Translations under genes and position numbers: made by a program
Origin: Geosiphon pyriformis uo1
Taxonomy: Eukaryota; Fungi; Glomeromycota
Assembly: GCA_016748015.1 (NCBI GenBank)
Contig: JAAOMT010000599.1
Coordinates: forward strand, 248,001 to 312,000
Length of the DNA: 64,000 nucleotides
Direction: 5' to 3'
In this document: positions 22,767-60,657 of the stretch, piece after piece
Position numbering within the stretch: position 1 is the first letter of the stretch
Layout: every line of letters begins with the position of its first letter
Notes under the pieces: model-generated
The model's database searches: none
The model's input: the letters and a program-made list of their open reading frames with translations, nothing else
Told to the model about the DNA's origin: nothing

Positions 22767-24063
22767 ATGAACTTTGATTTTATTGGCTTACTTGAAAGAC
22801 TGGTTGAAAAAAACCTTTCGTATGATAACAAGTCGAAACAGAAAAATTGTTTTATCGTCATAGGAAATGAATCTGCAGGTAATTTTGCGTGTTTATGTGA
22901 TTATGTCTGGAATTAACTTAATAGATACCTTTTGCTTAATCCCCATGTCTTTTTTTTGGATTAAAGATCTCGATTCAATTATCGGTTCTCTGGGTTATGC
23001 TTACTTGAATCAAAGATTAGGCGGCACAAGTGATGATATTTATCTTCCCGTTATCCAAATACCACGACAAGATCTTTCTCTTCGGCCTGAATGTGAATTT
23101 GTATTTCGGGAATGTGGAATCAACACCCAAAATTTTGTGTTTATAGAAGATTTTCAGGCCCAGTCTGATTCACTCACAGCAAATTATAATGTTCGTATCG
23201 TTATGGTTGATCATAACAAATTACTTCCTTCTTGGGAGAGATTCACGGATCGAGTTGATGTCATACTTGATCATCATCAAGACGAAGGGTTGTATTTAAG
23301 AGCACAGCCACGATGGATTGAACCTGTTGGTTCCGCTTCATCTTTAGTAGTTCTAACGTGTCGTGGAAGATGGAAAGCGGAATATGACGAGAATGACGAA
23401 GAAACAAGATTGTGGGATAAAAAAGTAGCAAAATTACTATTGGCTCCAATATTAATCGATACGGTTCTTTTAGATTTTTCCAAAGGCAGGACAACATCCA
23501 AAGATCAAGAAGCTGCAAATTTTCTACTTAATATCCTTCAGCCTGATAATAATTGGAATCAGCTCATCAAGGAATACTATAATAGCATTCAAGAAGGACG
23601 TTACAGTGTTTTTCATCTCCAAACCAGTGATTTACTTCGAAAAGATTATAAAGAATGGTCCTCGGTTGGAGATTTTCATCTGGGAATGTCGAGCGTTACT
23701 TGGTATTTGGATGCCTGGATCGAAAGGGATTGTGGACTCGACACTTGGATCAAGCATCTTAGAACTTATGCTGAAAAAAAACAACTGGATTTATTTATTG
23801 TGATGACAACTTATCATCATCCAGAAGGATTTCAAAGAGAGTTAGTAGTATATCCGATTGCGGATGCTTTGAAGAACGGAGAATTTATATCCAAATTATT
23901 GAATTCTGATCTCAACTTGGAGGATTATTCGTCTCAGCATGTTCTACCCGGAAAACTGGGAGGAATTTTTCTTTATCAGCAAAAAAACCTAAAATGGTCC
24001 CGAAAGCAGGTATACCCTTTCCTCAAAAGTGTACTCCAATCAATGCCAGTGGTTAAGCCATAA
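22767..24063 (+). CDS. PPX1: Exopolyphosphatase (DHH/PRUNE family); exons 22767-22878 and 22967-24063
   Basis: Splicing rebuilds GNESADLDS. Also MVDHN, ILDHH, VGSASSLV, ILIDT, LLRKDYKEW and SRKQVYP. Confidence 0.93.
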
Positions 24064-28319: not shown

Positions 28320-31300
28320 ATGGAGACGGGATACCCCCCACCAGCACGAGGGGCCACAATTAATCGTGGCAAGACTCTCAGCAGGCCTGAACGTTACCAG
28401 CCAGCCACTCCGCTACTCACAGGTCAAAAGGAGAGTTCATCTTGGGATCCATGGGTTGTTTTTTCGCGTGTTGTCACTTTTTGGGCACCTGGAGCTCTAT
28501 TATCGTCCATAGGTCATCTTGGTGATAAAGGTTCACAACAAGCGTGGCGAGAAAAGATTGCACTATGTTTCATCGCACTCATTATGAGCGGCATCGTCGC
28601 CTTCTTGACTATTGGCTTTGCTGCTGTGCTATGTCCACCGTCACAAGCAAGTAACCCTCAAAATTTTTTGCACTATGGCGATTCACCAGGTAAATAAAAA
28701 TCGTTAAAAATTGAAGAGTTTAAATTTTTAGTATTAACTGTCTGTTTAGCTAAGAGTTACAAGAGCTTATATTTATTTCATTGAAATCACATATTTAAAA
28801 AAGTCACCTCAATACGTTTAACTTAATTGATCATAACCGTTAACTTCAATATTTAACTAAACTTTTAGGAAATCTTGGTATCCTCGGTTGGCAGTTTAAC
28901 ATCTCATCTTCAGATAATCGTGGCAACAAAGCTCTTGACTTTTATGCATTGAACGCACAACAAAATGGGCAAGATATTACAAACAGGTTCAGACGTGACA
29001 ATAACCAAATTGCAGCATGTCAAGGGGATATCAAAAAGTTCATGGCCGTTAAAATGCCATTATGCCAAGACCCGACTCAATGTCCTCTTCCACTATCACC
29101 TGAAACTTTTAATCTTTTCAAAATCTACAACACCACTAAGCGAGTTGGTTATGATTGGAAACAATTAGCAAATAGCACCTTGAAAAATTATATGGTCATC
29201 GATGGAAATGTCCTAAATCTTGATCCATATATGAACGCCAATCGAAACCCAATACCTAATGATGACGTAGATCTTGCCATTCGCACAGTATTAGGCACTG
29301 ATCACGTCCAGGGTGGTAAAGATGGCACTCGTCTTTTCTTTGGAAGGAAGGAATTGAAGGACACTGTCAATTGTCTGGTAAAAAAATATTTTGCTGGAAA
29401 TATTGATAAAGAAACAATTGGTTGCTTCACTTCCCAACTCTTCTTATATGTTTCATTGACCGTTATTTTGAGTATTGTCATGGTTCGATTCTTCATGGCC
29501 TGTGTTTTCGATTGGTTCATCTCACATCGTCTTGCTCTAGAACCAAAGAAATCAGATAAAGCTGTCGTGTCTCCACAAGTTAGTGGCGCCGGTGGTCGTG
29601 CTGCTCCATGGGCTCAACGTAATGAATCTGGTTCTGTAATCAAAACTATTGGCATGGATGACGTAGGCAATGATCTTTTCACAGTATTACTGGTCACTTG
29701 TTATTCTGAAGGTGAAGAAGGTCTTCGATGCACTTGTGAATCAATGGCTGCTACTGACTATCCGGATGATCGTAAATTGTTATTTTTGGTTTGTGATGGT
29801 ATCATCACTGGTCATGGTAACGACAAGAGTACCCCGGATATTTGTGTCGATATTTTGGAATTATTGCCTGAATTCAAAGATCCTCAACCTCAATCTTATA
29901 TCGCTGTCGCTGCTGGCTCCAAACAACACAATATGGCTAAAGTTTATGCTGGTCATTTTGGTAAGTTAAATTCATGAGTCAGGTTGATCCGTAGTGGCTA
30001 TTTCATCTCCCAAGTTCTAATATGATTATTGAGTATCACTGATTTATACATTTTTAATCAAACATAGTCTACAAAGATCGTCGAATTCCAACTATCTGTG
30101 TGGTTAAATGTGGTGGTCCTGACGAACAAGGCAAACCAAAACCTGGTAATCGTGGTAAACGTGATTCTCAACTGATTTTGATGAACTTCTTCAGTCGCGT
30201 CACCTATAATGATCGTATGACTAGTTTGGATTATGATTTGTTTCGTAAAGTTCATCGCCTTATGGGCGTTACCCCCGATTTTTTTGAGATTGTTTTAATG
30301 GTATGTTCACACCTTTTTAATACTCCTCATTTTACATCGTCTTTGAAAATTACTAAATTAAACTCAATAAACTTTCTTTCGTATTAAAGGTGGATGCAGA
30401 TACTAAAGTATACCCTGATTCACTCCGCTTATTAATTAACTGTATGTGTAACGATCCCTTGATCATGGGTCTTTGCGGTGAAACCAAAATTGCAAACAAA
30501 AAAGATTCTTGGGTCACAGCCATTCAGGTCTTTGAATATTACATCTCTCATCACTTGGGTAAAGGTTTCGAATCTGTATTCGGTGGTGTGACCTGCTTGC
30601 CAGGTTGTTTCTGTATGTATCGTCTTAAAGCAAGGAAAGGTGATGACGATTGGGTACCAATCATCACTAAGCCAGAAATTGTTCAGGAATACTCGCAAAA
30701 TACTGTCGACACTTTACATCAAAAGAATTTATTGTTACTTGGAGAAGATCGTTTCTTGACCACACTGATGTTGCGTAATTTCCCACATCGAAAAATGATG
30801 TTCTGCCCCCAAGCCGTCTGCAAAACTATTGTGCCCGATGAATTTAACGTATTACTGTCACAACGTCGTCGATGGATTAACTCTACCATTCACAACTTAA
30901 TGGAATTAGTTCTTGTCCGTAATCTTTGTGGGACTTTCTGTTTTTCGATGCAATTCGTTATCTTCATGGAGTTGATCGGTACCGTTGTATTACCAGTTGC
31001 TATCATGTTGACTTATTCATTGATCATTGGTGTCATTCTGAAACCACCAAAGGATTTTGCTGATGGTATTCCATTGCTCATGTTGGGGATGGTTCTCGGT
31101 CTACCAGCCATTTTAATTCTCATTACTACACGAAAAATTGTATACATTGCGTGGATGTTGATTTATTTATTGGCTTTACCTATATGGAATTTCGTTCTAC
31201 CCACCTACGCTTACTGGCATTTCGATGACTTTTCATGGGGTGAAACAAGGTTTGTAAAAACCAAAAATAAATGGTTGATTTTGATGGTTGATTTTTATCA

Positions 31301-31775
31301 TTACTAATTTGTTTATCACCCCCTATTACTTGTGATTTACAGAAAGGTTGAAGGTGAAGGTAAAGGTGATGACCACGGTAAAAAGGATGGTGTATTCGAA
31401 GCTTCCAAAGTACCATTGAAACGCTGGGAAGACTGGGAACGTACACGTCTCCGAAAAGTGAAACGTGACGCTGAACGTCAACGACAAGCACAACAAATGG
31501 CACCAGCACATCTCACACACTCTGCCATATCAGGTGAGGATGATGATAAAGGTCTGGTAGATAATCAATATTACGCCGAAACCTCTTCAATAACATCAGC
31601 AGTATCACAAGACATTGGTCTACCACAACAATATTATGATTATTCAGTGGGTGGTGGTAATAATTCAACAGCACCAGGATATCCACCGCAACATTACGAT
31701 CAATATAATCAACAACAGCGACCACCACAAGATCAATACGGTAATCAATATGGTGGGCAACAGGGTCATTATTAA
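28320..31775 (+). CDS. Chitin synthase, division 2 (class IV-like, no myosin motor); exons 28320-28689, 28869-29960, 30068-30300, 30390-31249, 31343-31775
   Basis: [74 protein letters not shown]. All four introns are GT-AG and preserve the frame. Confidence 0.96.
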
Positions 31776-32942: not shown

Positions 32943-34535
32943 TTAATTCAAAAGATCATTAAGTGACATCCCACTTGGTCTTTCATATTTTATCTCCACT
33001 ACATCATCATCACCATCATCGTTATATTTTTCTATTTCTTGTGCTTCCTCTTCTGCCTCATCTTCATACTCATCCATAACTTCATCTAGATCTTCCATTT
33101 CAGGATCTGATTGATGATCACCAAAGTCTTTTAATGTTTCTATCAGAATTTGGCTAGCACTACCTATGGGGTTTTTTTCTCTGTGAGATTGAAGAAATAT
33201 GATAAATAAAAGGTAATAATGTGGTTTGCAATGAATCAGTTGGGACTTTGGTTTACCTCAAAGTGTGCAAAACCCTTATTAGTTCATCCTTTAGAGGAGT
33301 GTGATGGAAAATTTCAACCATCTTACGACATTGATCTATGCTAAAGATTGAGGCAGACGGTCGAGGCCACACACATATTAATATATGTGAGATTTGAAGA
33401 AGTGAAAAAAATGTGGCCCTTTAATTACCATGTTTTAAATTTTACTTCATCATTAGGCAAATTTTGTCCGTATTTCCGAATTTTATTGAGTGTTGTCTAA
33501 AAATTTTTGATATATTGAAAGATTATTTTTAAATTTACGCTCTGGAAAGCTAGCATATCTTTTGTTACCTCAACGATATCCGGTTTTGGTAATGGAATCT
33601 TTTGGTCAGATGCATAACTCTTTGGATGAACCCCGCGTAAGTTTCTGGGATCAATAAGTAAATGATGCTCAGATCCTTGAGGAAATATGCTCAAGTGAAA
33701 ATCTTTTTTAGAAGTAAAGTTTAAATAAATTACAATATGGTCCAAAGAAATATTAGAGCAGGGATATAAAAAAAGACGAAATACTTACATGGAGCTTCTC
33801 CTTTAACATATCCGTTTGGCTTTGGCGAAATCATTCCATACCAATCATCTCCTAACGGAATAATTCCTGTAAATTTATCTATATATGAGGCCTGTAATAA
33901 CATGTAGAAAACGTCGCTTTCATACTGATTTAAAATGGTTAATATTTTCAAATAATAAAGGTTAAATACTAAAATCAATGATTTCAACTAAAATTAATTT
34001 ACTTCATCTTTCAACTGTGTACTTAAGGTTATCCAATAAATGGACACGATTGGGAGTCTGATCTCATGTTTTGAGAATCCAATGATGGAAAGTATTGGAG
34101 GCAACTCTGGGGCTAATCACAAGGGAAGTAAAAAATTTGAACCGCGGCGCGAAGGATCCGAAAACTCGAATTAGCTTAATGTAATAAGAATAGGAATAGG
34201 AATAGGAATAGGAATAGGAATAGGAATCTGAGTGATTCTCTATGAGTGATTAATTGAACATTGGATTTATCTGCACTTACTAGAATCATCGGCAAAAATT
34301 GGAGTTAGGCAAATTGACATGGCAAGATGTCCACATGCGAGGGTCCTGCTGATATACAGATTAGCTTTATATGTAAAAATTGAGGTATTCTTAGATTTTT
34401 TGATTGAATTTTTAATCTTGAAATGAGATGAACCGGAGCAATATCAATGGGAAAATTTTCCAAATTCGGAACTCATTATATTTCCAAATCTCTCCCACCT
34501 TTTGTTGAAGATCCACTCATTATAGTAACTTCCAT
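32943..34535 (-). CDS. INTS14: Integrator complex subunit 14 (VWA9)-like protein, C-terminal region; 5' exon structure uncertain
   Basis: Phase-consistent GT-AG exons 34281-~34350, 34003-34112, 33789-33924, 33569-33702, 33429-33496, 33257-33340, 32943-33180. They give TLACGHL, LSIIGF, GIIPLGDDWYGMI, LSIFPQG, KSYAS and KPDIVETTLNKIRKYGQNLP. These are collinear with recalled animal INTS14 segments (LKCGHL, IVGF, VQLGPEWHGML, MSLFEPG, RSYAQ, KPSGLQTDVQKILRNARKLP). Confidence 0.72.
34187..34227. repeat. (GGAATA)n hexanucleotide microsatellite in an intron of the INTS14-like gene
   Basis: About 7 tandem units seen directly. Confidence 0.9.
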
Positions 34536-35758: not shown

Positions 35759-36305
35759 NNNNNNNNNNNNNNNNNNNNNNNNNNNNNNNNNNNNNNNNNN
35801 NNNNNNNNNNNNNNNNNNNNNNNNNNNNNNNNNNNNNNNNNNNNNNNNNNNNNNNNNNNNNNNNNNNNNNNNNNNNNNNNNNNNNNNNNNNNNNNNNNNN
35901 NNNNNNNNNNNNNNNNNNNNNNNNNNNNNNNNNNNNNNNNNNNNNNNNNNNNNNNNNNNNNNNNNNNNNNNNNNNNNNNNNNNNNNNNNNNNNNNNNNNN
36001 NNNNNNNNNNNNNNNNNNNNNNNNNNNNNNNNNNNNNNNNNNNNNNNNNNNNNNNNNNNNNNNNNNNNNNNNNNNNNNNNNNNNNNNNNNNNNNNNNNNN
36101 NNNNNNNNNNNNNNNNNNNNNNNNNNNNNNNNNNNNNNNNNNNNNNNNNNNNNNNNNNNNNNNNNNNNNNNNNNNNNNNNNNNNNNNNNNNNNNNNNNNN
36201 NNNNNNNNNNNNNNNNNNNNNNNNNNNNNNNNNNNNNNNNNNNNNNNNNNNNNNNNNNNNNNNNNNNNNNNNNNNNNNNNNNNNNNNNNNNNNNNNNNNN
36301 NNNNA
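35759..36305. other. Assembly gap (N run)
   Basis: Run of N bases. Confidence 1.
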
Positions 36306-39765: not shown

Positions 39766-40425
39766 ATGTCACTACCAATTAGAATAAAAACTATTCCAAA
39801 AGATCTTGATTTCAGTCGACCACAAAGTTCTTCAGCACCATCGCTGGTCAGATGTTCCTCGCCAACACACTCAATTTTTTTAGAAGCTCATCACCAACTA
39901 CAACAAACAACAACTCAAGAAAATCTTTCAAATCAATCTTTCCAACAGCCACAACAAAACAAGAATAGATCACGATTTCAAAAACATTTACGAAAACCTC
40001 GTTCATTCGACAGTTATCTCGATTCCAATTTCAATATCTTACCCCAGGCAAAATCATCATGCGATAATTGTGTATCGATTGATTCGAATATGGTATTGAG
40101 CAATTGTTCAAAAGGACATGGATATATTAACAGTGAACAATCGTCATCCTTGTTTTCCACCACTCTGAAAATTTTACACCGACTTTTATATGCAATTCGG
40201 TTATTTGGATTTACGGAGCCTATTGAATATGATTCTAGACGAAGTAGTCTCTTAAGAATCGAATCCCCTACGTATGAGATGCAAGAAGATGAACTAGTCG
40301 AAGTTTATTGGACAGTTGAAGATGAAGTTTTTGGAAAATATAATCATGAAGAAGAAGAGGAAGAGGAATTTTTATTTATTGGTCATGGAAAGTCACCATC
40401 TTCTTTGCCACGATTTCTGCATTAA
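39766..40425 (+). CDS. Uncharacterised Ser-rich disordered protein, paralog A (219 aa, intronless)
   Basis: Intact ORF with higher GC than its flanks. Motifs SSPTHSIFL, LRKPRSFDSYL and EEEEFLFI are shared with two other ORFs in the window. TATAAAA at ~39508. Confidence 0.8.
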   Translation: MSLPIRIKTIPKDLDFSRPQSSSAPSLVRCSSPTHSIFLEAHHQLQQTTTQENLSNQSFQQPQQNKNRSRFQKHLRKPRSFDSYLDSNFNILPQAKSSCDNCVSIDSNMVLSNCSKGHGYINSEQSSSLFSTTLKILHRLLYAIRLFGFTEPIEYDSRRSSLLRIESPTYEMQEDELVEVYWTVEDEVFGKYNHEEEEEEEFLFIGHGKSPSSLPRFLH

Positions 40426-41106
40426 TATAGTGAAATATATATAATAATATAATGGTTGAAGAATGATATTTTTCATTGTCAATAGAAAGATATGTTATAG
40501 AGATTTTTATGATGATTTAGAAACACTTTTGAAAAGACTTATCCATTCTGAACATTTTTTTTTAGAAAAAATATATAACACTTATAATTTCCCTTGTGAT
40601 TTTTTTTTTTTGGAAATATTTCTCTTTTAAATTTCTCTGAAATTTACTTTTTTCATGTACCAAAATAATCACCAATGTCTTATAGTTTTAAGGAATTTCA
40701 GTAAAAATATGTATATATAAAAAATCAAAAGGTTAAAAAATAAAAATACGAAATAATTTTTTGCTACATAACAAATTTTACTTACGTTTTGAATATGAAT
40801 ATTCCCGATAATCTGAAAAAAAAAATAATTTGTATTCTATTTTTTCCGTTTTTTAAAAAATTTGCACCATAAAACTAAAATTTTTTGTGAAACTGTCATC
40901 AGATTTTTTAATATTTTTGTGTGGAACTGTTTTATCACAAATAGAACAAAAAAACCATCATTTATTTGTATCACCATTCAAAACCTTTCATTTACATTTA
41001 AGGAAAAATTTATAATCAAAAAAATGAAGATTTTTAATGAATGAACGAATTTACTAATTTGTAATGAATTTAGTGAAATCGAATAGGTGCAGAATGGAAG
41101 TAATGG

Positions 41107-41224
41107 TATGTAAATGAAGAAAATAATATGTAAATGAAGAAAATAATATGTAAATGAAGAAAATAATATTTAAATGAAGAAATGATATGTAAATGAAGAA
41201 AATGATATGTAAATGAAGAAAATG
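41107..41224. repeat. Minisatellite, about 6 x 20 bp (TATGTAAATGAAGAAAATAA)
   Basis: Head-to-tail near-identical units without spacers. Confidence 0.9.
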
Positions 41225-42058
41225 CATAAACCCTAATAACTTTACAGAACAATTAAATGATAAATGGGATGATGATAATAAAACAAAAAAAGTTTTTTTT
41301 TTTCCTGACTCTGTATAATCTCATAATTTAAAAATTTTCAAATACCTTTTTTGTTTAATAATTTTCTAAATCGAACGAAATAAAGTATTTTAGAAAAAAA
41401 AAAGGAAAAAAAACTCCTTCCTTCCTCCCCCTCCCTCTCCTGAAGTTTGATAATATGGAATCATGTGGAAAAAAACCCCCCAATTTCAATTGTTTAAAAA
41501 CCAAAAACAAAGGTTGAAAAAAAAAAAAGATTTTTAAATCTTTTTTGTTTTCCAAATAAATTTCCTTGTTTTGAAAATATCATTTCTAGAATAGAGTTAC
41601 CATATATGTAAATACAATAGAATATAATATAATCAAGTAGTCGTATAAAAAAAAAAAAAAATTTTTTTTGTAACAAAAAACTGGTTCTTTAATTCCATAT
41701 ACATACAAGAAGACTCTTTATTTTGAAAAATTGATTTATTGATTTTAAAAATACGTTTACTTTTTTCTTTTTAAATAATTTCGTTTTTATTCAGAATGAG
41801 AGTTTGGTTGGTATTCGGTTTTTAGAGAAAAAAAATAATAATTAAATCTTATTTTATTTTATGGAAAAAAAAATTTTTTTTTGATTAAAAAAAAAATTAT
41901 ATAATTTAAATTGTGTTTTGGTTTTTCAGAATGAAAAATATAATTTATTTTTCAAATATTTGGGAGAAATAAAAATCATAATTCGAGAATCTATAAGTTT
42001 TAGGGTCATAAGAAATAAGTCTGTTTAATGTGGTTAGAACGAGAAAATAAACTAATAA

Positions 42059-42598
42059 TCAAGAACTTTCAAAAGAAAATTTTTTGATTTCTGGTTGTTT
42101 AGGAAGTTTAATAAAGATAAACTCTTCTTCCTCTGTCTCATCATCAATATCCAGATCACTTTGTGACGAAATAATACTACTTCTCTTGCTAAATCCTCGA
42201 TCGTTAAATAAGGCATTCGTATTTGAAGGTTGGTTATAGATAGGTGACTCAGGTGGAGTTGAAAATCGTTTATTTTGGCACTGATACAAAGATTCTTTTT
42301 GGTCATAGTTCGAGGTGGAATTTGATGAAAAGTAAGAATCCAAACTGTTTATAGAAGAGCTCGAATCGGACCAGATTGATCGATGTAACAAGTATACGTC
42401 AAACGATTGTGGTTTTCGAAGATATCTAAAAAATTTATGTTTTTCTTTTTTAGATTTTCGTTGGCTTTCTAGAAAGATCGAATGGGTTGGGGATGAGTTT
42501 AGATCTGGTAAAGGAGATACATTTCCAGGATTGGTGTTTTGTTGATCATTTGGAATCGATATTTGAATCTTAGGTTTGGCTTGAATGGTAGAAAACAT
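42059..42598 (-). CDS. Uncharacterised Ser-rich disordered protein, paralog B (179 aa, intronless)
   Basis: Motifs SSPTHSIFL, LRKPQSFDVYL and EEEEFIFI. Convergent with paralog A. Confidence 0.8.
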   Translation of the reverse strand: MFSTIQAKPKIQISIPNDQQNTNPGNVSPLPDLNSSPTHSIFLESQRKSKKEKHKFFRYLRKPQSFDVYLLHRSIWSDSSSSINSLDSYFSSNSTSNYDQKESLYQCQNKRFSTPPESPIYNQPSNTNALFNDRGFSKRSSIISSQSDLDIDDETEEEEFIFIKLPKQPEIKKFSFESS

Positions 42599-42735
42599 TA
42601 AACCAACAGGAATTTATGATTAAACTATTCCCTGAAAGCTTTGAATTCTTTTGAAGAAAAAATTTATTTTTCAGAATTCAACCCGACTTGTTCTTAAGCC
42701 TTTTTTTTGTCTAAAATAAAGTGTATCAAATAAAA

Positions 42736-42804
42736 AATAACAACAACAACAACAACAATAATAATAAAAATAATAAAAATAATAATAATAATAATTATTA
42801 TAAT

Positions 42805-42860
<56 letters not shown>

Positions 42861-42865
42861 AACAA
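42736..42865. repeat. Compound (AAC)n/(AAT)n microsatellite upstream of paralog B
   Basis: Seen directly. Confidence 0.9.
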
Positions 42866-43279
42866 TACGGAGATGTAAGTCGGCTTTTGTAAATGTGTCA
42901 TCTGTCTGTTGAGAGAAAGGGTCATGTACGACCGATGTGATTTTATTTTTGATACAATTGGTGGGTTTTGAGAATTTCGGTGATCATAAATTAGCACAAC
43001 ACCGAATATTATTAGATAACAAAAAGTATTCAACTCCTTTAGACAGCAGGTTTCCTTAAAATTTATTCAAAAAGTATCCGTGCGCATTAATATAATTATT
43101 TACAGTTATTGTATTGAAACGTTTTTAATTTGGAAATAAAGCATGTTTTTTCTGTTCAACAAGGATCAGCATTCACTGTTAAGGGTGACAGTGAAGAGGT
43201 TCGTGTGTAATAAAAATTTTGAAGTTGAAAGCAGATATTATGTTTTTTTGATTGTTTACAATGATAATCCATCTTTATG

Positions 43280-43405
43280 AAGTAAGTAAAGTAAGTAAAG
43301 TAAAGTAAAGTAAAATAAAGTAAAGTAAAGTAAAGTAAAGTAAAGTAAAGTAAAGTAAAGTAAAGTAGAGTAAGGTAAGTAAGGTAAGTAAGCAAGCAAG
43401 TAAAG
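43280..43405. repeat. (AAAGT)n/(AAGT)n microsatellite
   Basis: Seen directly. Confidence 0.9.
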
Positions 43406-43890
43406 AAAAAATGTTTTTATATTTTATAGCATTTAAAAAAAGAAACAGTAGAATATTTTATAATTTTCTTCAAATTTTTAGAGGTCAGCATTTAATAAAG
43501 TTTAAAGTTTATCGTGACCAACAATGTGTATGGTCGGATGATTGAACTTTAACAATCGCGTGATGAAAAATTTAGTCAAAAATTTTTTCAATCTTTATCC
43601 TTTTTTAGAAATATGTTCAAGAGTTTGAGGGGTCAAGTGAGCATCATTAATTGAACTGTGACGTTTTTGTATTATTGAGCAAAAGAAGTTTGATTAAAAA
43701 TTATGTAATTGTCATTTTTAAATCAAAATCAGGTTAAATAAGTTATTAATTAATCGATTGATTATTATTATTATTTTTCACCCAGTTTGACAAAGCTTTA
43801 TTTTAAACTTTCATTGTTTTTGAGCTTGTCCGAAAAATTAAGTATTTCATTTTAAAAGATTTAGTGTGAAGATTAAAAATTCTTTGAAGA

Positions 43891-43970
<80 letters not shown>

Positions 43971-44559
43971 TACATTTTTTTTCAAATTAATTGATGTTTG
44001 AAATTAAAAAATTCAAGTGAAATATTAATTAGGTATGAAAGAAGAATAAAAAGGTTTCCAAAAAGAAGGTTTCTACATTTAGATATTAAATTTGTTTTTT
44101 ATTGGTAAATTAATTATTGTAAAAATATTATGTTCTCATGAATCTCTTAAATTTGAAGTTAAAAAGATCAATCCTTTTTTCTTGAGAATAATTATGCCAC
44201 CTCCATTTTAGCGTTAATTAATCCAATCACCATATTAGAACTCATAATAAGAAGAAATGAAAATTTTTACTTGTTTAACAACAAAAGTGATAATTTCTAG
44301 AATGCATTGATTGATGACATAAAGAGATTTTAAGATTTATAAAATTTATAAAATTTATAAAAATATTGAAAAAAATAAAAATTACATGGATATAATATGA
44401 TTATTAATTCTCATTCTCATTCTCATTCTCATCCAATTTGTAGTAATAAAATTACAAAATATGGATTTGTATAAAATTTTATGAAATCTAATCTAAAAAA
44501 ATTAAACGTATGATATTTTTTAATAAACATTAATTAACAATGACTGCTTATCTTCAAAA

Positions 44560-45036
44560 TAGCTAATTTAGGAGTTCAATTGCAAATTAATATTTATCTA
44601 TTATGTTTAATTGTTGAAATCTTCTTGGGATCTTTTGTCAAAAAAAATCTACGCTGATCATTAATAAAAAATTTCATTCATAATTGAACAATGATGCAGG
44701 GTCCTGGCACAATACATGTATTTTTAAAAAAGATCTTGACTCGATTCGTCTTATACCTTGGATCATCTTTGGCGACCAATTTTACTTTACTTTTCAGATT
44801 TTTAATTTTTTTCATCCAATTCACAAATTCTTTTTTGTAAGAGTGAAATTTTATATCAGGTTTGAGAGTTCAAAACTCATAGAATATACCGAATTCTCAT
44901 CATATTCCTTTCATTATAATCAGAAAATTGGTGAAGTCTTTTTTTTTAAATTTCTAGTTTTATAAATAAATAATTTGTTAAATCGTATCAGAATTATGTT
45001 CAGAAATGAATGATACGGTTTATTATCTGTGATGAC

Positions 45037-45081
<45 letters not shown>

Positions 45082-45540
45082 TCTTTTCAAGTTAAATTTT
45101 ATTGAAACTAAATACCATAACGGTGAAAACCCATTTTGAATCTTTCAAGATTTATTCAAAACCTCAAGAATAACCGATTTTTTTATAAAGAGAAAACAAA
45201 TATATATCTTTGATAAACTTAAATTTTTTATCAATAATATAAATAATTATCAATGGAAATTTTGATAAAATCTTTAAATATTGAAATGTATGGGCTGAAA
45301 AAAATGTTTCTAACCAAGAATCTCGTCTCTCAAATCTTGCTTGATCACCATATCTCATCAGAAATGTAGATTCCCCATAATAAAAACGGTCATCTCCGAA
45401 TTTTTCCCATGTTAATAAATCCTATCGTAGAAGCAGATGATGTAATTCATTACCCGATAATACCTAATTTTTCAAGACTCTCGATTTCTCATCGAAATCA
45501 ATAGTCGATTTGTCCTTTTTTTCCAATATCGAAAATCCGT
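44560..45540 (-). pseudogene. Possible decayed protein-coding gene of unknown family
   Basis: Long protein-like minus-strand stretches broken by stops and frameshifts (DLLTWEKFGDDRFYYGESTFLMRYGDQARFERRDSWLETFF; KPDIKFHSYKKEFVNWMKKIKNLKSKVKLVAKDDPRYKTNRVKIFF). Confidence 0.35.
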
Positions 45541-47037
45541 GTTTTTAATTATCGTGAAAAAATATAATAGGAATTTTTATTCAAAAAAAATACGAGAAAA
45601 AATAACCATTGTCCTCTCTTTTCCATCTGGAGACAACTGCACAGATCATGTTGAATGGCTCTTCATTTCTTTTTTTCGTTTAAAACTACTGCAGTTATAA
45701 ATTTTTATGCATCTATCCTGGAAAAGACTCTAGATTCATTTGAATCTATATCTTAACCAATAAAAAAGAGTCATCACTGTCAATGATGATTAAAAGTATT
45801 ATGGCCCATTGTCGGCGATGACTGCCGAGATGATCGAACCCTTTGCTGGAATTTTTGACATCCGAAATGAGTAAGTATCTGAGCCACCATTTTTATTTTC
45901 TTGTTAGCCAAGATTGACCTTATTTGTAAACTTACATTCCAGAAAAGTCACACTAAAAATATATAATTATTGGTGAAAAGATGTGTTTTTTTTCCCAGAA
46001 TTATTGTTAATCCTATATTGGTTACACGTTTTCAAGAAAAATAAGAAGTTTTGAATGTTTCAAAAAAGTTATTTTTTGGGGGTTAACGACCCAATTATGC
46101 AAGGAGAAACAATAATATTGAGATGGACAAATTTTAAAAATGGTTTTGACAAAAAATTGTGCCATTGAAAAAAAGACGACGAGCTAGAAAAAAGAGATAC
46201 TCCCAATTTTTAGATACAGTATGTCGGAAACACATTTTTCCTATATCCAACAAGCAAGTATTTATGATTCAGATTAAATGCATAATAGCTTCATTTATTC
46301 TTTTTAAGTTTTCCCTAAAAAATTATCCTACAAAATATATCATGATTACCTCATCATACAGAGAACTCATCTGGACTCATTAATGAGCATTGAATCTTGA
46401 TAAATTCAAAAGCAGAATCCTTAAAAAAATCCTACAAGAAATGGTAAAAGACAAAGGCTGAAAACAAAAAAACCTGCGAAAGTCTAAACAATTTTTTCAA
46501 TTCTGCATAGTCTTATTCCAAATTTTTACCCCAGAATACCTTTTTTAGTTTTTTAATTTTTAATTGTTGCACATATATATATATATTTTTTAATTCATCT
46601 TTTTTTCGTTTCAAAAACTTGATTAGGTTAGTCTGGTTTATTATTATTATTATTTTATTATTAAAACGCAAATAATAATGAATCGTTTCATTCAAATGAC
46701 CTTTTAATTAAATAATGTATGAAATTTTGGTTAGTGCATTTGGGAAATTTTAATGTTCTAAAAAGAAGTTTTACTTAAAAAAATTGAATCGACGACATTT
46801 ACTTATTTTGGGAATGTAAAAACGGGTAAGTTCTTTTCTTTTTTCAGGCAAGTCTTTAAAAAATGGACAATAATTATGTCTTGTTTACTCGAAATTTGTG
46901 ATTAGGTTCTTTTTCATTATCCAAAATTTTAAATTAAGTATATAAAAGATGTATTAATTTGAATTGAGGGATTCATAATTGGATGAAATAAAAAATATTT
47001 ATTCTGTTAAAATGGTTGGATAAATCGAGTAGGATAG

Positions 47038-47069
<32 letters not shown>

Positions 47070-49528
47070 TTTTTTTGTATCAAAAATTCTGCAAAAAAAG
47101 CTTTAACATAATATTATTTGTTAAAGATAATTTTCATAACATGAGATTTTTCAAATTTACATTTTTTGAAATAAAAAAATTATAATCGATTTTTATTTAT
47201 TTGATGAGATTCAAATAAATAAAATCTGAAGAACAATGAAATTTGGCCCTAATCCGTATAATGGACAATGAACGCCGTTAATTTTCAAATCTAACCATGT
47301 TAATCATCCCAAAATCTTGGGGGATGATCACTGCTTTCTATTCTTTGCACAAATATTTTTCAGCCTCAGAGAATCATCATCAAAGTAGGCATGAAAGACC
47401 CTGCAGTACCGCTTATCAGGATAAATACATCTCACATGTCTATTACATTTATATTTGTATCTTTTGTTAAAATGCCTTTCTTTAGTTGATAAAAAAAATT
47501 CCTATATCTCAGCGTTTTTAATCACTTGATTAAGGCATAGGATATAATCATTAATTCAAAAATGATGATGAAAAATGATGATATTTATTATATCACACTT
47601 TATTAGATATCACGAGAGCCAATCTGGCAAGAGATAAGGTAAAAATATTAGGTATAAATTTAAAATAATACTGCCTAATTTAATTATTAATATAACCTAA
47701 AAAACAATTAATATATATTTTCTAAAGATTAAAACTCGGGAAAGAAGAAATTAACTTTAATTTTTGGTTTATAAATTTTAAAATCAATAAATAGAAGCGA
47801 AAATAATATTTTCAAAATATTTCTAGGTCTAACTCACTTGATTTATAGTCAACTTTTTTTAAAATTTAAAATCGTTTAAATTGAAACATTTATTAAGAGA
47901 ATTACATAGAGGCTTCATTAAAAAAACTTATTTATGCTTCGAAGGACTAGCAATCTCTAACCCCTCTTCAATTATTCTCTCTAATGACGAAAAATGATCA
48001 AAAAATAGTGGCGCCAAATATTTCAATCTCTAACTTTGGTTGGAATTAAAATTTTATATGTATAAAGGTGACAACTTTATAACATCCTATCATTATCATA
48101 TCTGAATTAAGAAGGCTTTTATGTTGGTGGGCTGGTTCGCATTTTGTATTGCATGAAAATATTTACAATTTAATTGATTCATTATTTTATTTTTTTGAGG
48201 ATCTAGAATAGTTTTCACGGGGTCCAATTATATATATATATAAGTTTTGCGAAAATGATTTGCAGTGATTCTATTTGAAAAAAATCTTTTTTTTGATAAA
48301 ATTCAAAACAAGAAAATCTCTTGTTCATAACCTATTAAAGAGATCTTTTATTTTCAAATTTTTTTTTTTTTTCTAAAAAAAAAATTTTAATTAATATTTT
48401 TACCAATTTATTTTTGATTGATTACATTATTAATTTCTTTGAATAAAAATATCTAAAAAAATTTAATGATATAATAAAAAAATGTGTTGCAAATTTTCAT
48501 AATAGTTATGAATTTAAAATTAATATATATTTATTTTTTTATTTTGAAAAAATAATGAAAATTATCAAAACCAAAAGTAAAATATATTTATATTTTTTTT
48601 GGTTGATTAAAAAAATATATTTAATTTATCTAAAATATTTTTTTTGTTTACATAATTTTATAAATATTAAAAATAGTTAAATTTAAACAAATCATTTTTT
48701 TTTAAGAGATTATTAGGATTTTTTTTAAAAAAATTAAAACCAAATAAGTTTAAATATTTTCAAAAGTAAAAAACCGAAAATATTAAAAATTTTTTTAAAA
48801 TTATAAATTAATAATGATGAGTCAATGAGTTAATGAGTCAATTCTAATGATTCAGAATATATTTTAAATAATATTACAAAAAAAATTATATATATATATA
48901 TATGTGTGTGTACCATATTTTTTAATATTAATTTCATTGATATCACAATATTATATTATAAAATATTTTGGAAAAAATTTTAATTTCATCTTTCAAGTAT
49001 AAAAAATTAATAATAAATAAATAAATAAATAAAAATAAAGATTTTTTGATTACTGGTTATTGGTTACTGGTTTTTTGTAATAATATCTTTTTACAATAAA
49101 ATCTTTTTACCTGAAAAAAAAAATTACTAAATTAAAAAATTTTATTATTTTATTATTTTAAAACTAGCTAACAATTTTTAATGAATTAATTTTAATAAAA
49201 AGAAACACTATACTAATGAATTAATTTTAATGGAAAGGAACACACATATTAGAACAGAATTAAAAACGTAATTAATACAAGTTTGCTTTTAAATAATGAT
49301 TATTTTATACAATCTTTAAAAAATTCATGATTTTAGAATTAAATATATATATATATATATATATATTTTTTAATTATAAGAAATAAAATATTATATCAAA
49401 TATTATTATAAAATAATATATATTAGAAAATATATATATATATATTGTCATACCAAAAAATTTATTAATTAATAATTGAAAATAAAGTTTACAAAAAAAA
49501 AACCAGTTTATTAATGATAAAATACAAG

Positions 49529-49570
<42 letters not shown>

Positions 49571-52115
49571 GTTTTTTATTTGCATGACCTTAATTTATTG
49601 AATAAACCATTTTTATTTGCATGACCATAATTCATTGAACAAAACATTTTATTTTTTTTAAAAGACTTTTCTAATTAGAAATTAAAAATATGCACAAAAC
49701 AGATAACCAACATATACCTGTTCACTCTTTTTTTTTTTTTTTTTCGTTTATTGATTAAATGTAGTATCGTAACCTATCACAAAATAAAATGAATGTTGTT
49801 CAAAACCTTAAAAACGTATAAAATTCAAAGTTGTAAATGTTAATTTTTATTTTAAAAGTTTATATAAGAAAGCATAATAAATATATATATATATATATGA
49901 TAATTTAGAGTTTTAACATAATACACAACATTTTTCGATTATTATTATTATTTAAAAAAAAAAAAAGGGTTTAAAAATCACTTTTTAAAATAAAGTCTTA
50001 TTTTTTTTACACTTACTTGTTTAAAAATTATTGAAAAAATTATTCTCGAGTTAACAAATTATTAATTCCGTTTTACAAAAATTATTTCAATTTTAATTGG
50101 TTTAAGCAAAAAATTCCAATAGATTTATTAGACTATTATTATATAAAATAAATATGAAAAAATGAACTAAAACATCTGTAATTTTTTTTTCATCCCAATA
50201 ATCAAACCAATAAATTCCATCATAACCAATAAATTATTAGAAAAATTTAGGAAAAACTGAATGCTGCGAAAATCTTTGTTTTCGTTATATTCAAAAGTTC
50301 AAATCTAACCATATTTTCGGGACAATTTCACATATTGGTTTATCATTTCAAATTTGATCTTCAATTCATATAAATCCCTAATATTTGGGTTATTGAAATT
50401 AATGACATTCTAACTAAAAACTTTGGAAATTAATAAAATTATTATTATTAAAATCTGGTTTTAGTATTTAAAAAAAAGTTTCAAAATTATTACCGATCAT
50501 ATTTTTCTAATGGATCATATTAAATTGATATTAAATATTTTGTTTAGTATTCTAAACTATGAATGATTGACAAATGATAATTAAATGCTTTAAAAATATC
50601 TATTTAGAACAAAGAATCTCATTGTAATTTTTTATATTTGAGATGTCAAAAAACTTTTTCTTCGATCGAACATAGTTATAAAAAATCTTGAAAAATCAAA
50701 TACAAATAAAGCTTTCTGAAACAATCTATTTTCAAAGACAGTTGTTATATTAATTCATATGAAATGTTTAATTGATTGTATTTTCAGCTAAATATTGATG
50801 TCAATTTTTTTTTTCAATGCATAGATTTACAGCCCAGATTGTTTGCAGGACTTGAAAAAAGTTTTCTGCACGATATAATTAATAAGATAAGTATATATTA
50901 TTATTATTATTATTATTATTATATTATAGCTAAAAGGCAAAGAAGAAGATTGCTACACAACCAGTAAATGAAACTTTTTATCTCTGCACGTAGTAGAGCT
51001 CTTTTTTTTTTTTTTTTTTAATAATTGGCAACAGCCGGTTTCTAAACTGCCAAAGTTGAACTATCAAATTAGGATTTTCGTTACTCCTGTCAAGATAAGA
51101 TGAAAAAGTAAGTAACTTACCCACAGATCATTATTCTAAAAGCACGTCAAAATTTAAATGCAAATAAAATAAAATAAAATAAAAGATAGCCCTTTGAAGG
51201 ACAAACTTTTATATCCTATAAAAAATTGTAAATAATGTCTCATATCGAAAATTGGCGGGAAAATTGGGTAATTCATGAGATTGGAATATTTTTTAATGAC
51301 ACGATTGTGTTAAACGCACACCTTTTGTTTTCTAGAAATCGAAGATTGAGCATAAATAGAATGAATTAGTAGATTAGAAAATTGATCGAATTTCTCTGAT
51401 TCTGCGTGCTACAAAGATCGAGATCGGGTGATCATCACTACCGTCAACAATGATTCTTTTACAAATATCTATTTTGGGTTAGTAGAAATACATTTGACTT
51501 GGAGAGGTGGATCTTTTTTCAGATCTCAAATTTATTTCATTAGACAAAAGGTTATCTATAAGAGAGCTTTTCACGTTTTTTAGAATTCAAAAATTATTAT
51601 TTTAAAATTTTAAAAAATTGTTATTTTTCTTGTCTTTTAAAATTCAAATTTTTTTATTTTTCGTGTTTCTTTAAATTTAAAAGTTGTCATTTTCTTTTCC
51701 AAGCTACCATATTTCAGAAATCATGATTTGAAAACCTGAAATCAACCTTACTAAAAAAACTCGTCGTTAAACTATAAAGGATTCTAATGTTTAAATACAA
51801 CCAAAAAGTAGTTCAATACCTTTACTTGATAAGACTAATCAATTTTTTTTTAAAATATTTGGCGCTTTACACTTTTATTCATTTTGTTCATATTGCATAT
51901 TTCTTAATTTTTCAAGTAACTTTCTTCATTTGTTCCAATCATGTGAATTTTATTTATTTATAGTTTATTTTTTCATTTTTTCATTTTTTAAAAAAAGTTC
52001 TAGAAGCATCACTTTTAAGAAAATCAAATTTTGTCTAATTGGTAACTTTATTATAATTATAAAGAAACATATTTTACATATATATATTTTATACCATTTC
52101 ATGAAGTGTGAATTG

Positions 52116-52173
<58 letters not shown>

Positions 52174-54162
52174 TTCAAACTTTGAATATTATACATTTCA
52201 TAAAACAAAAACCTAGTTTTTTCAAAAAACGCCGTCATTGAATAACTATTACTAATAAAAAAAAATTTTCTTTATAGCATGCATCTGCGATGCAATGTCA
52301 GACGGCGGAAAAGAAATGTTTGTATGGTTACCATCCAAATAAGAAGAACTATAGAAATAATTTTTCCGTCGAGTCTCTTTGCTAACAATGTCATTGAGTA
52401 AAATCTGACATATTTTTGTGATTTTTATGCAAAAAAAATGTCGCTTACTTTCAGTGCATTAAAAAATGGTCAATCGGTTATTCATTCTCCATGATGAGAT
52501 TCAAAGCTTATACTTACTTACTTATTTTACTTACTTTCTTACTTACTTACTTTTTTATTTATTTATTTATTTATTCACTTACTTACTTGATCCCAATAAA
52601 TTTATTTCCAAGAACTATGTTTTGTGCCAAGTATTATCAATGTCAAAAGAAACTTATAATCATCACGTTCCTAAAACTCAGGGTGTTGAACAAAGGATTC
52701 TTCTATAGTTCTAACCTAAAAACGCGTCTTATTGAACCTTCTAAAAGTTGATAATAATATTTTTATTACGAAAAAAAACATCAAAATAAAAGTAGTAAGA
52801 AGTTTTATAATATACAAATGAGATTCTAACCTATTGAAGTCATTAAAATGAAAATTATCATTTTGAACCGTAATACAATGTTCCATGTGATCAAATATAA
52901 ATTTGGTAAACTACTTGCTGAGTTGATCGAAATAATTCTATTTAAAGATTTTCTAACTTTTGAGATATTTTAAATCAAATGTTATCGGTCGCCAAAGGAA
53001 GCAATCATTAAATAAATAAGGCATCTATTTTTGTCAAGTAATTTCACATAGCCTGATAATAAAGAAAATTCGATTCTTGACAAAATTTTGGTGAAGATGG
53101 AATATTTTGTGTGACAATATCTTGGCATAATTGAAGTAGTGGTGGAGCTATTTTTGAAATAAACTTACTTTTTAATATATATATATATCTTAAACTCATG
53201 TAATGAAAATAATTTTTTTCTTCCGAAAAAATCATTGTTACGTGAGATTTTTTGGAAATTAAGTAATATTTTAAGGTATAAATGTTTATTTTAATTTTGA
53301 TTTTAAATGCCTAATTCGAGATTGTTTGTGTACTAAAATCTTTGATTTCTTAAATAACGATGTAATTCTCAAAATTGGTGGTATGAAATGAAGTTTATTA
53401 AAAAACTAGTTTGAAATATTTTTTCATCAAAAATCAAGAACTATTTGGTTAAATATGTTTAAAATTCTTTTCAAACCAATGTTTTATTGCTCAAACAAGC
53501 ATGGAAAATTGAAAGATGTGAAGGTATCTTGATTTTTTTAAAATCTTTCAGAGTTTGAGTGTAAGAATGAGGCTTCAATAAAGATGACATGAGGGTGTCT
53601 CGTCAATATTTGGGCAAGATATATAATAATGATGTCACGATATATAGGAAAAAAACTCTGACAAAACTTTCAGAAATCCTTGTCATTTAGATATTGGAAT
53701 TTCTAATTTTTCATTCTTTTTGTGTTATGCATGCATGCATGCATATTTATTGTTATTGTATTACACGGGGTTAGTGGAGGATTACAAGAATGGGATAAAA
53801 TGTTTAGATAAAAATTCAAATGTTAATCTCCATCTTAGGAGATAAGGAAATTGTAAATAAGGGTTTTCAAGAAATTCTATTGGCGAAAAAAAAAAATTTT
53901 TCTAATATTCAGGAAATGTTTGGGTTAAATTTACCAAAAATATATCGAATCTTTAAATAAATAAAATTTCAAAACATTATGAAAAATGTCCATGGATCAA
54001 AGGTGTTAATAATAATAGGAAAACAAAAACGAAAACGAAATAAAAACGAAATAAAATATAACGAAACGAAAAGAAAATGATAATAATTAGTATAAAGACA
54101 AAGGCTAATAAATATTTTGGAATTTTTCATTTTTTTCGTTGTCTGGTTGGTTTGTCAATTAC

Positions 54163-54203
<41 letters not shown>

Positions 54204-54315
54204 GTCGTTCGGTTGGTCTGTCAATTATTATTATTATTCGTTGTCGTTTGTTTTGAAAATATTTGACAAATTTTTCTTTTTTGAAAAAAACTCATTTGAT
54301 CATAAATGACTTGTT

Positions 54316-54410
<95 letters not shown>
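54316..54410. repeat. (TGTATG)n/(TG)n microsatellite
   Basis: Seen directly. Confidence 0.9.
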
Positions 54411-55498
54411 CTATGTTGTGTGGTTTAGAAATCTTTAATAATAATAATATCACAAAAAAAAATCATCATCATCATTTATCATTATCAAGATGAACGCGAT
54501 ATTCCGTAATTAAAATTTTCATACTCTATATTATTCGCGCGCTTTTTTTTTTATTTTTTTTTATTTTAAATTCTTTTAATAATAGAATCTGGAAGAATAA
54601 GCATTTCATCTTGAAAATATATATATATATGATAATTTTGGAGTATTTTTCATAATTTTCATAAAAATGTAATGTAAATCTCAGTGTGAGTAATCCTTTG
54701 TTTAATGAAAATTCTCGAATGGGCATGTGCTGCTTTAAGAATTTTTTTTTTATATCAAATTAATGATGTGATCAATTATTCAATCCCCTTTTAGAAATTT
54801 CTTTTGTTCAAAAAGATCAATATTGGTAAATTTACTGGAAAGATAAAATCAGTTAGAAACAAAAATTCTTTTTCAATCAAAACATAGAATTAGGCAATGT
54901 GAACTGTGGAATTAGGAGACCCCACAACAATAGTCATCATTATCATCATCATAATTATAATAATAATAATAATAATCATTATTATCACAAACATTCAAAT
55001 GACATTTATCAATGATCATACGTTTACATTTTTTTTTATTTCATTCAATCAATTTTAATTTTCAGCAGATTTTTATAAAACTGTCAAATGGGCACCAAAA
55101 TTTTTTAAATTATTAAAGTTTGATTTCAAAGTCTTTAAATTTGAAATCAGTATTTACAACTTGACAAGAATCAAAAAGTTTAATTAAAGGAGATGTTTGG
55201 TCTTTTAACACAATCAATACATATTGATATTATGAAAAAGTTTTTTTGGGTTGTTTCAAAAGTATTCATCAAGTGAAATATTTTGTATTTTGATATAGTG
55301 TTAAAAAACTCTGTACGGTTGGAATGTTCATTTTTTTTGTTGTTGTTGTTGTTGTTATTGTTGTTGTTGTTGTTGTTGTTGTTGTGAAAAAAAAAGAGTT
55401 TTCAATACAAATAAACCATAGTTAATCTCTGAATATCATTGGAGTTTTTCAAGAGTAAAATTTACTTGTATTGGTTAATGTTGAAAATTTTTAATTTT

Positions 55499-55805
55499 TT
55501 AACAAGAAAATGAAGTATTTCGTGAAAGTCCTTTAAGTGGTGTTTGAGGTCGAGAAGAAGAACGAGATGATGAAGACATGTAAAAGAATTCTTCTTCCTC
55601 TGATTCACTTTCCTCAAAATGTGGTTCCCATTCTTCCCCTTCACTGATATTCGCCGAACTCAACGGTGTCGATAATTTTGAAGAGTGATTTTCACGAATA
55701 CCTTCCATTAAATTGAAACGAATTGCGGAAGAAACACGACGAATAAATCCTGGTGATTTATTTGAAGATTCATCTTTGGTGGTTTGTGCTAAACGAGAGT
55801 GTTTC

Positions 55806-55856
<51 letters not shown>

Positions 55857-56470
55857 AATGAAGATAATGAAGAGGAGGATGATGAGGATGATGATAATGA
55901 AGATAATGATGATGATAATAATGATGAAGAGGAAGAATTAAATAATAATTTATGATTATTGCTAGACTGAGATTCTTCAGAGAAATTCAAGGAACTTGTT
56001 GAATATGATCGCGAATGAGTTGAGTGAAATTGAGAAAGTGATTGACCATAAGGAATTGGAGAGTTAATTATTTCTTCTGTGAGAATCACTGATTGTGGAC
56101 GACTATTTCCTGAAATACTACTACTATCACAAGATGAAATGGAAGAGATAGAATTTGAACGAGATCTCAAGTAAGTATCAAAAGCGGGAGGTTGACGAAG
56201 TTGTTTCTTCAAATGTTTTCTTCGACGACGTTCATTTTGTTCTTGTTGTTGAATAGCGAGAAAGACTGAGTGTGTTGGAGAGGAAGAATAACCTGACCAT
56301 GGCGATGGTGATGGCGATGATGATAACGACGACGACGACGATGGTGACGAGATATTATTATTATTGGAAATTTTTGAAAGTGTTGCATACGCGGAATCAG
56401 GAACATTATAGTTCTTGTTCGAGTGAAAACTATTATAAGATTGATTTTCGAATGATGTAAGCCCTACCAT
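55499..56470 (-). CDS. Uncharacterised Ser-rich disordered protein, paralog C (323 aa from ATG 56470, intronless)
   Basis: Motifs SSPTHSVFL, LRQPPAFDTYL and EEEEFFYM. Poly-Ser tracts are encoded by TCA repeats. The ORF-track start at 56593 is a non-ATG codon. Confidence 0.8.
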
Positions 56471-60637: not shown

Positions 60638-60657
60638 NNNNNNNNNNNNNNNNNNNN
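60638..60657. other. Small assembly gap within poly-T
   Basis: N run. Confidence 1.

Follow-up and report, generated by a model that had tools for sequence, protein, structure and literature searches.

Three short intronless genes, here called A, B and C, lie in a 64,000-nucleotide stretch of the genome of Geosiphon pyriformis uo1 (the window; positions 248001–312000 of contig JAAOMT010000599.1 in the 128-Mb assembly GCA_016748015.1), and the string of short motifs that their products have in common raises the question of whether they represent an undescribed protein family and what such proteins might do. An earlier note, made from the letters of the window, had seen in them an old, selectively maintained family of disordered signalling adaptors or regulators and a candidate for an undescribed system. 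The analysis reported here points to an undescribed family, of a protein of known general kind and not a new system; unusual about it are a motif switch and an old gene cluster.

All three open reading frames (ORFs) are real, open and intronless, and blocks 1 and 2 and an acidic–aromatic end block occur in each of them in the places and the order first described (Table 1); this order is fixed across the family. Searched with a hidden Markov model (HMM), 1.84 billion representatives yielded 23 matches, and all those with a name belong to Glomeromycotina: the many-copy species Ambispora gerdemannii and A. leptoticha, together with Glomus cerebriforme, Rhizophagus clarus, Funneliformis, Diversispora, Acaulospora and Scutellospora; three further matches sit inside the Glomeraceae clade of the tree. 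One or two copies per species are found in Glomerales and Diversisporales (hereafter the single-copy lineage) and many clustered copies in Ambispora. The record for R. clarus refers to a gene named GLOIN_2v1740781. The search profile was built from Geosiphon sequences only and did not return R. irregularis itself, and the alignments behind later searches were made without genes A and B; as far as searches with such a profile reach, the family appears to be restricted to Glomeromycotina. A word search with B alone matched only itself, a search with the block-1/2 region gave only already known members, two metagenome scans confirmed no locus, and a literature search with the Rhizophagus gene identifier and motif strings found no relevant paper and none naming the gene.

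Motifs were counted in 31 family proteins, comprising 12 from the single-copy lineage and 19 from Geosiphon and Ambispora (the expanded copies), with expectations taken from shuffled sequences; about 20 patterns in all were put to the test, with the caution that related sequences do not count as independent. One difference between the two groups concerns block 3. In the single-copy lineage this block carries the canonical RVxF motif for docking to protein phosphatase 1 (PP1, Glc7), [RK]-x(0,1)-[VI]-x-[FW], in 12/12 proteins against 1.5 expected, with V-R-F invariant and a protein kinase A (PKA)-type RRxS site beside it in every case (RRxS as such occurs in 26/31 proteins). The motif is present in 0/19 expanded copies, A, B and C included; 13 of these retain a hydrophobic–basic–Phe/Leu remnant, and block 3 of 11 shows a spaced hydrophobic pattern fitting class 1d of the CRM1 export signals, which is found in 0/12 proteins of the single-copy lineage. 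As far as the compared sequences show, block 3 has two mutually exclusive forms, and this is the clearest new result.

The family alignment also corrects the assignment of several smaller motifs. The AIR[L/F] segment common to A and C is real and family-wide, and C carries RRVSS directly before AIRF; its counterpart in A is LHRLLYAIRL, and B has none, lacking block 3 and, according to the motif count, the acidic-Trp motif found in 23/31 proteins. RRSS of A and KRSS of B align further downstream, with the DGSSI block, so that RRSS, KRSS and RRVSS, which had been taken for one basic phospho-site, are not one homologous site. Likewise, the homolog of the SSCDS of C in A is SSCDN and not VSIDS, with which it had been paired. 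ESPxY was rejected as a family motif: it recurs in only 4 Geosiphon paralogs, at scattered, non-equivalent positions, and in 0/23 non-Geosiphon sequences.

The locus holds more than the cluster of three genes first described. Profile searches of the genome revealed eight intronless paralogs within 81 kb (contig 287.8–368.6 kb) on both strands, five of them past the right end of the window, and a divergent ninth on another contig; the 638,479-base contig that holds the cluster includes one paralog annotated as Geosiphon pyriformis G9A89_022210. In the phylogenetic tree, the Glomerales/Diversisporales sequences form one clade (support 100/99), and Geosiphon and Ambispora paralogs, from genera grouped as Archaeosporales, interleave: C and its sister, the paralog at 346.5–347.5 kb, group with Ambispora 6396/11668 (100/99), and two more pairs have supports of 92/90 and 97/79. 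Copies in Ambispora also lie next to each other: one 17.5-kb contig carries three and another contig two, and their order agrees with that of the Geosiphon cluster if one inversion is assumed, the orthology in the middle being weak. Because the paralogs interleave and the gene orders fit, the cluster is, on the evidence of tree and synteny, older than the split between Geosiphon and Ambispora.

The ratio of nonsynonymous to synonymous substitution rates (dN/dS, Nei–Gojobori) was 0.28–0.49 for seven single-copy ortholog pairs and 0.26–0.51 for eleven Geosiphon/Ambispora pairs; it was below 1 in all 18 pairs, with every bootstrap interval below 1, the distant pairs being near saturation. These are real genes under purifying selection, and the description of the family as old and selectively maintained holds. 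The low-complexity linkers could suggest chance ORFs, decayed copies or transposon debris, but with frames open at every locus read, dN/dS consistently below 1, orthologs in at least 10 species and neighbours conserved in Ambispora, such an artefact is barely conceivable and is refuted by conservation. For five orthologs (R. clarus, D. eburnea, F. geosporum and two Ambispora genes), the public gene models contain introns by which conserved blocks are cut out; read through, the frame is open, and these introns look like annotation errors. Four environmental contigs of 1.0–1.2 kb each consist of just a family gene with short flanks; they look like candidate transcripts.

No described family accommodates these proteins. 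Pfam scans of 3, 8 and 29 proteins gave a best E-value of 0.002, with matches scattered over single members and none over the cut-off where shown, and a profile search of the PDB gave no significant match (best E-value 0.7). Two AlphaFold models have a mean predicted local distance difference test (pLDDT) score of 53 and a predicted template modelling score below 0.2, and are disordered save for a short helix in block 2, the sole confidently modelled region (pLDDT 70–85). The proteins thus remain undescribed, disordered and motif-based, as first suggested. A very distant relationship to an ascomycete orphan family, YBR071W-like or DUF4667 (PF15700), would agree with the similar size and composition and with the top language-model matches: two queries that are about 32% identical both ranked 'YBR071W-like' first in the ESM Atlas, with DUF4667 lower. 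However, their scores of 0.84 and 0.85 are below the threshold of 0.9, and a third of shuffled proteins reach scores under 0.9. PF15700 matched no member of the family, nor anything in the genome in a search made without a positive control, and no ascomycete appears among the named HMM matches, which makes this kinship very unlikely. A signal peptide, sought in A, B and C as a test for secreted effectors of arbuscular mycorrhizal (AM) fungi, is absent, the longest hydrophobic run being 4–5 residues. The family belongs neither to DUF4667 nor to the secreted effectors, nor to the RCAN proteins considered below.

The most constant feature is block 2, LRxPxxFxxYL, present in 31/31 proteins against 0.0 expected; all 31 also have a basic N-terminal and an acidic C-terminal half. 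Block 2 has a Ser with Leu (−5), Arg (−4) and Tyr (+4) about it, which fits the AMPK-type pattern, and a regular expression for such sites matches 27/31. In three separate clades, one of which includes C, Ala stands in place of this Ser, and the alternation presumably resembles that between a substrate and an inhibitor peptide; the layout Leu-Arg-x-x-x-Ser/Ala-aromatic-Asp is likewise, in our reading, reminiscent of the ACC SAMS site, the GluN2B Ser1303 site and autocamtide/AIP. Compared with CaMKII sites, block 2 differs in its invariant Pro at −2 and in a position −3 that is not always basic.

Taken together, the motifs lead us to favour, tentatively and with less than even confidence, a short, disordered and probably short-lived regulator that couples a kinase to PP1, the expanded copies being without canonical PP1 docking. 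Block 2 would bind one conserved partner, most likely a kinase of the CAMK group of Snf1/AMPK type, as a substrate in the Ser form and a pseudosubstrate in the Ala form. In the single-copy form, block 3 would dock PP1/Glc7 through K-x(0,1)-V-R-F, and phosphorylation of the adjacent RRxS by PKA would gate this docking. The N-terminal PxIxIT-like motif (11/12 proteins of the single-copy lineage and 4/19 expanded copies, including B) could bring calcineurin input, the acidic–aromatic C-terminal block could mark the protein for turnover, through Atg8 or otherwise, and a Puf site may destabilise the mRNA. Block 2 and the tail are also present in the Geosiphon and Ambispora copies, A, B and C included; these copies might serve, under different regulation, as adaptors or decoys on the kinase side, or as weak PP1 binders. 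All of these partners are predicted from motifs. Most fungal Glc7 regulators bind via RVxF (PMC6506691), the combination of RVxF with disorder is typical among PP1 partners (PMC4516873), and AM fungi possess the Snf1, Reg1 and PKA pathways (PMC8401276). In Geosiphon our search found one Ppz gene and one PP1 gene, the latter on contig C600 at about 394–396 kb. A conserved Ile-Val/Thr lies 8–13 residues after the Phe of RVxF and could be the PhiPhi motif.

Several points weigh against a kinase/PP1 regulator. The 12 orthologs with RVxF are related and count as roughly one origin, they emerged from a trial of about 20 patterns, and the canonical motif is missing from every expanded copy. Inspection of the alignments revealed no evident second PP1 motif (SILK or Arg motif). 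Block 2 has an invariant Pro and an invariant Phe that the AMPK pattern does not call for. Finally, the searches found no outgroup, so that RVxF may have been either lost in the expanded lineage or gained in the single-copy lineage. The adaptor or regulator role proposed in the earlier note stands as plausible and is supported by the RVxF and PKA sites of all 12 single-copy-lineage proteins; it is predicted from motif matches, and A, B and C are without this RVxF. A bolder and distinctly improbable version sees a kinase/phosphatase switch protein specific to Glomeromycotina: block 2 would be a motif of a new type by which the carbon-sensing kinase Snf1 is docked or bound as by a pseudosubstrate, and block 3 would have changed between a PP1-docking strand and an export-signal/helix motif when the gene expanded into the long-lived, order-conserved cluster of Geosiphon and Ambispora. 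A small remainder of the probability falls to partners that we have not thought of.

The form of block 3 in the expanded copies could alternatively indicate a phospho-regulated nucleocytoplasmic shuttle, under NFAT/Crz1-like control and without a DNA-binding domain, in which calcineurin would dock at the PxIxIT-like motif, nuclear localisation would be signalled by the basic stretch ahead of block 2, and nuclear export by block 3 of the expanded copies. Such a stretch, with 4–9 Lys/Arg within 16 residues and Ser runs on either side, precedes block 2 in 31/31 proteins, and the class 1d pattern, as defined in PMC3442415, is confined to the 11 expanded copies mentioned above. However, in genuine export signals the residues that separate the hydrophobic ones tend to be acidic, and many false positives fit the consensus (PMC3442415); the spacers of block 3 are basic, the AlphaFold models have no helix there, and the PxIxIT-like motif and the export-like pattern occur mostly in different lineages. 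We consider a shuttle unlikely.

Block 2 and the upstream regions could also be read as those of a G1/S cell-cycle regulator, with block 2 as the LP docking motif for G1 cyclins and the gene as a target of SBF/MBF or E2F. The Leu-x-x-Pro-x-x-Phe of block 2 fits LP positions p1, p4 and p7 in 31/31 proteins (10.1101/2020.03.02.973354), with p5 mostly Pro or Ala, else Gln or Arg, and Arg at p2, where LP motifs prefer Leu. An element resembling the Swi4/6 cell-cycle box (SCB) or the MluI cell-cycle box (MCB) lies 84–202 bases before the start of 8/8 single-copy-lineage genes (chance 1–5% each), two Diversispora species differing in it by a CGCG/CACG swap; the Geosiphon genome has a KilA-N match, and SBF has been kept in basal fungi (PMC4862756). 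Against this, the invariant Arg and Tyr of block 2 would go unexplained, full CDK sites occur in 7/31 proteins, which is no enrichment over the 8.9 expected, and the element is probably inside the 5′ untranslated region (UTR) and lies near only one of 14 expanded copies examined, namely C. The seven Geosiphon cyclin matches include no Cln-type cyclin by sequence reading, though an exon-wise search may miss one. This makes a G1/S role improbable. As a separate observation, a divergent A/B-type cyclin gene (L049, contig C563, about 73 kb, minus strand) has a single open frame of 414 codons with a short duplicated N-terminal segment.

The C-terminal tail brings in selective autophagy: as receptors or adaptors, the proteins would bind Atg8 through the acidic F-x-x-[IV] tail, Atg11 through DGSSI and cargo through block 2. 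An acidic tract with [FY]xx[LIV] occurs in 14/31 proteins and, if Met is accepted as well, in 21/31, where about 1.7 would be expected; the canonical core [WFY]xx[LIV] of the Atg8-interacting motif/LC3-interacting region (AIM/LIR) with acidic residues is present in A and B and not in C. DGSSI is present in 12/12 single-copy-lineage proteins and resembles, we presume, the Atg11-binding region of Atg19. Acidic residues ahead of the core are key to ATG8 binding (PMC6499816). However, what is conserved is an acidic F-x-F (24/31 proteins), whose fourth position is in many cases taken by Met, Gly, Ser or Tyr; fewer than half of the members are therefore canonical, and neither a membrane anchor nor a known cargo-binding domain was found. 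An autophagy receptor therefore appears doubtful. Soluble AIM/LIR proteins (Atg19/Atg34, TP53INP1/2 and the LIRs of ULK1 and ATG13 type) are similar in that aromatic-x-x-hydrophobic comes after an acidic run close to the C-terminus (PMC6499816), but have no homology to the family.

Returning to a regulator that links a kinase to PP1, the closest known systems are the disordered PP1/Glc7 regulators of the Inhibitor-1/DARPP-32, Ypi1, Reg1, Afr1, Bni4, Gac1 and GADD34 type. They too are short or disordered chains with linear motifs, but show no sequence or Pfam relation to the family, and the Reg1-type family of Geosiphon was not matched. We know of no counterpart of block 2 among them. The pairing of RVxF with a PKA-type site is a likeness of the single-copy lineage only (PMC6506691, PMC4516873). 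RCAN/calcipressin and other PxIxIT-bearing calcineurin regulators are likewise small and disordered with a PxIxIT-like motif and Ser-Pro sites, and by analogy a feedback role is likely; the family differs in having no calcipressin Pfam match and no FLISPPxSPP, and in the rarity of the PxIxIT-like motif among expanded copies.

Conservation extends into non-coding sequence. A Puf3-type element (motif from PMC4654594) occurs in 7/7 evaluable 3′ flanks of the single-copy lineage and 5/9 of Geosiphon, including those of A and C. Upstream of the Glomeraceae orthologs, colinear blocks extend out to −2.6 kb. Those at about 1.2–1.4 kb and 2.5–2.7 kb are near identical in Glomus, Rhizophagus and Funneliformis (L037, L039, L044, L045) and are likely regulatory elements. 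A second 3′ element of about 26 bases, roughly 55–85 bases past the stop and upstream of the Puf3-type site, was also noted in Glomeraceae (L037, L039, L042, L047). No promoter element common to the Geosiphon paralogs was found.

The cluster has a GC content of 19–32% and no repeats in common with its flanks; transposon remains become dense immediately to its right, and on the left it is bordered by genes for a class IV-type chitin synthase, a DHH exopolyphosphatase-like protein and a GH18 chitinase. In four other species, no or only tiny called genes lie within 8–10 kb of the family gene. A strong claim of a 'gene desert' was dropped: half of the Glomus cerebriforme locus consists of N, and eight genes per 81 kb is presumably close to the average gene spacing of Geosiphon.

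Table 1. Positions of the family genes, their motifs and neighbouring features (window coordinates unless another sequence is named)
Feature	Position	Strand	Remarks
Paralog A	39766..40425	+	219 residues; identical to database protein P0004
A block 1	39856..39882	+	SSPTHSIFL
A block 2	39988..40020	+	LRxPxxFxxYL; basic stretch before it
A block 3	40174..40203	+	LHRLLYAIRL, amphipathic form; lacks PKA site and canonical RVxF
A acidic tract + FLFI	40348..40380	+	AIM/LIR-like
A 3′ flank, Puf3-type element	40710..40717	+	chance of 0.19 taken by itself
Paralog B	42059..42598	-	179 residues; identical to P0001
B N-terminal PKIQIS	42557..42574	-	PxIxIT-like
B block 1	42470..42496	-	
B block 2	42389..42421	-	
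B acidic tract + FIFI	42110..42133	-	AIM/LIR-like
Paralog C	55499..56470	-	323 residues; long poly-Ser linker
C block 1	56258..56284	-	
C block 2	56168..56200	-	Ala at candidate phospho-acceptor Ser position
C block 3	55715..55744	-	IRRVSSAIRF; PKA-type RRxS within amphipathic pattern; no canonical RVxF
C acidic tract + FFYM	55577..55600	-	AIM-like only when Met allowed
C 3′ flank, Puf3-type element	55151..55158	-	
C upstream SCB-like CGCGAAA	56575..56581	-	111 bases before gene
Further cluster paralog	contig 312.2-312.7 kb	-	
Further cluster paralog	contig 346.5-347.5 kb	-	
Further cluster paralog	contig 354.9-355.6 kb	+	
Further cluster paralog	contig 358.6-359.2 kb	+	
Further cluster paralog	contig 367.9-368.6 kb	-	
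Divergent ninth paralog	contig C642, about 223 kb		no block 1; Pro at block-2 Ser position
Intron-bearing ortholog model	L039:10001-10603		
Intron-bearing ortholog model	L040:2091-2645		
Intron-bearing ortholog model	L040:7764-8366		
Intron-bearing ortholog model	L044:10001-10624		
Intron-bearing ortholog model	L046:10001-10666		
Sulfite reductase beta-type subunit	18-4046		by inspection
GH18 chitinase	4764-6302		
DHH/DHHA2 exopolyphosphatase-like gene	22867-24063		
Chitin synthase	28320-31775		CHS4-like domain
Spliced gene	32943-34535	-	last exon without Pfam match
Assembly gaps (N runs)	35759-36304; 60638-60657		
Non-coding stretch, 130 bases	47516-47644		inverted second copy at about 340.4 kb of contig, 78% identity
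Two ORFs of about 150 codons inside cluster	contig 326.2-327.1 kb (L016:4179-5138)	-	unrelated to family; no Pfam match; probably one spliced gene

The significance of the family is limited in that its function rests on short motif matches, and fungi have many small disordered families that are specific to one lineage. AM fungi, however, are obligate symbionts with little genetics, for which lineage-restricted conserved regulators are few. The gene is kept in every order where it was detected and, in the single-copy lineage, has conserved UTR and upstream elements, which makes it a concrete candidate for a lineage-specific phosphatase regulator, and the two natural forms of block 3 provide a ready test pair for yeast assays. 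Should the Snf1 docking and the switch of block 3 prove true, the family would represent a lineage-defining carbon-status regulator of obligate symbionts, and it would offer a natural example of a motif turned into a different one in situ.

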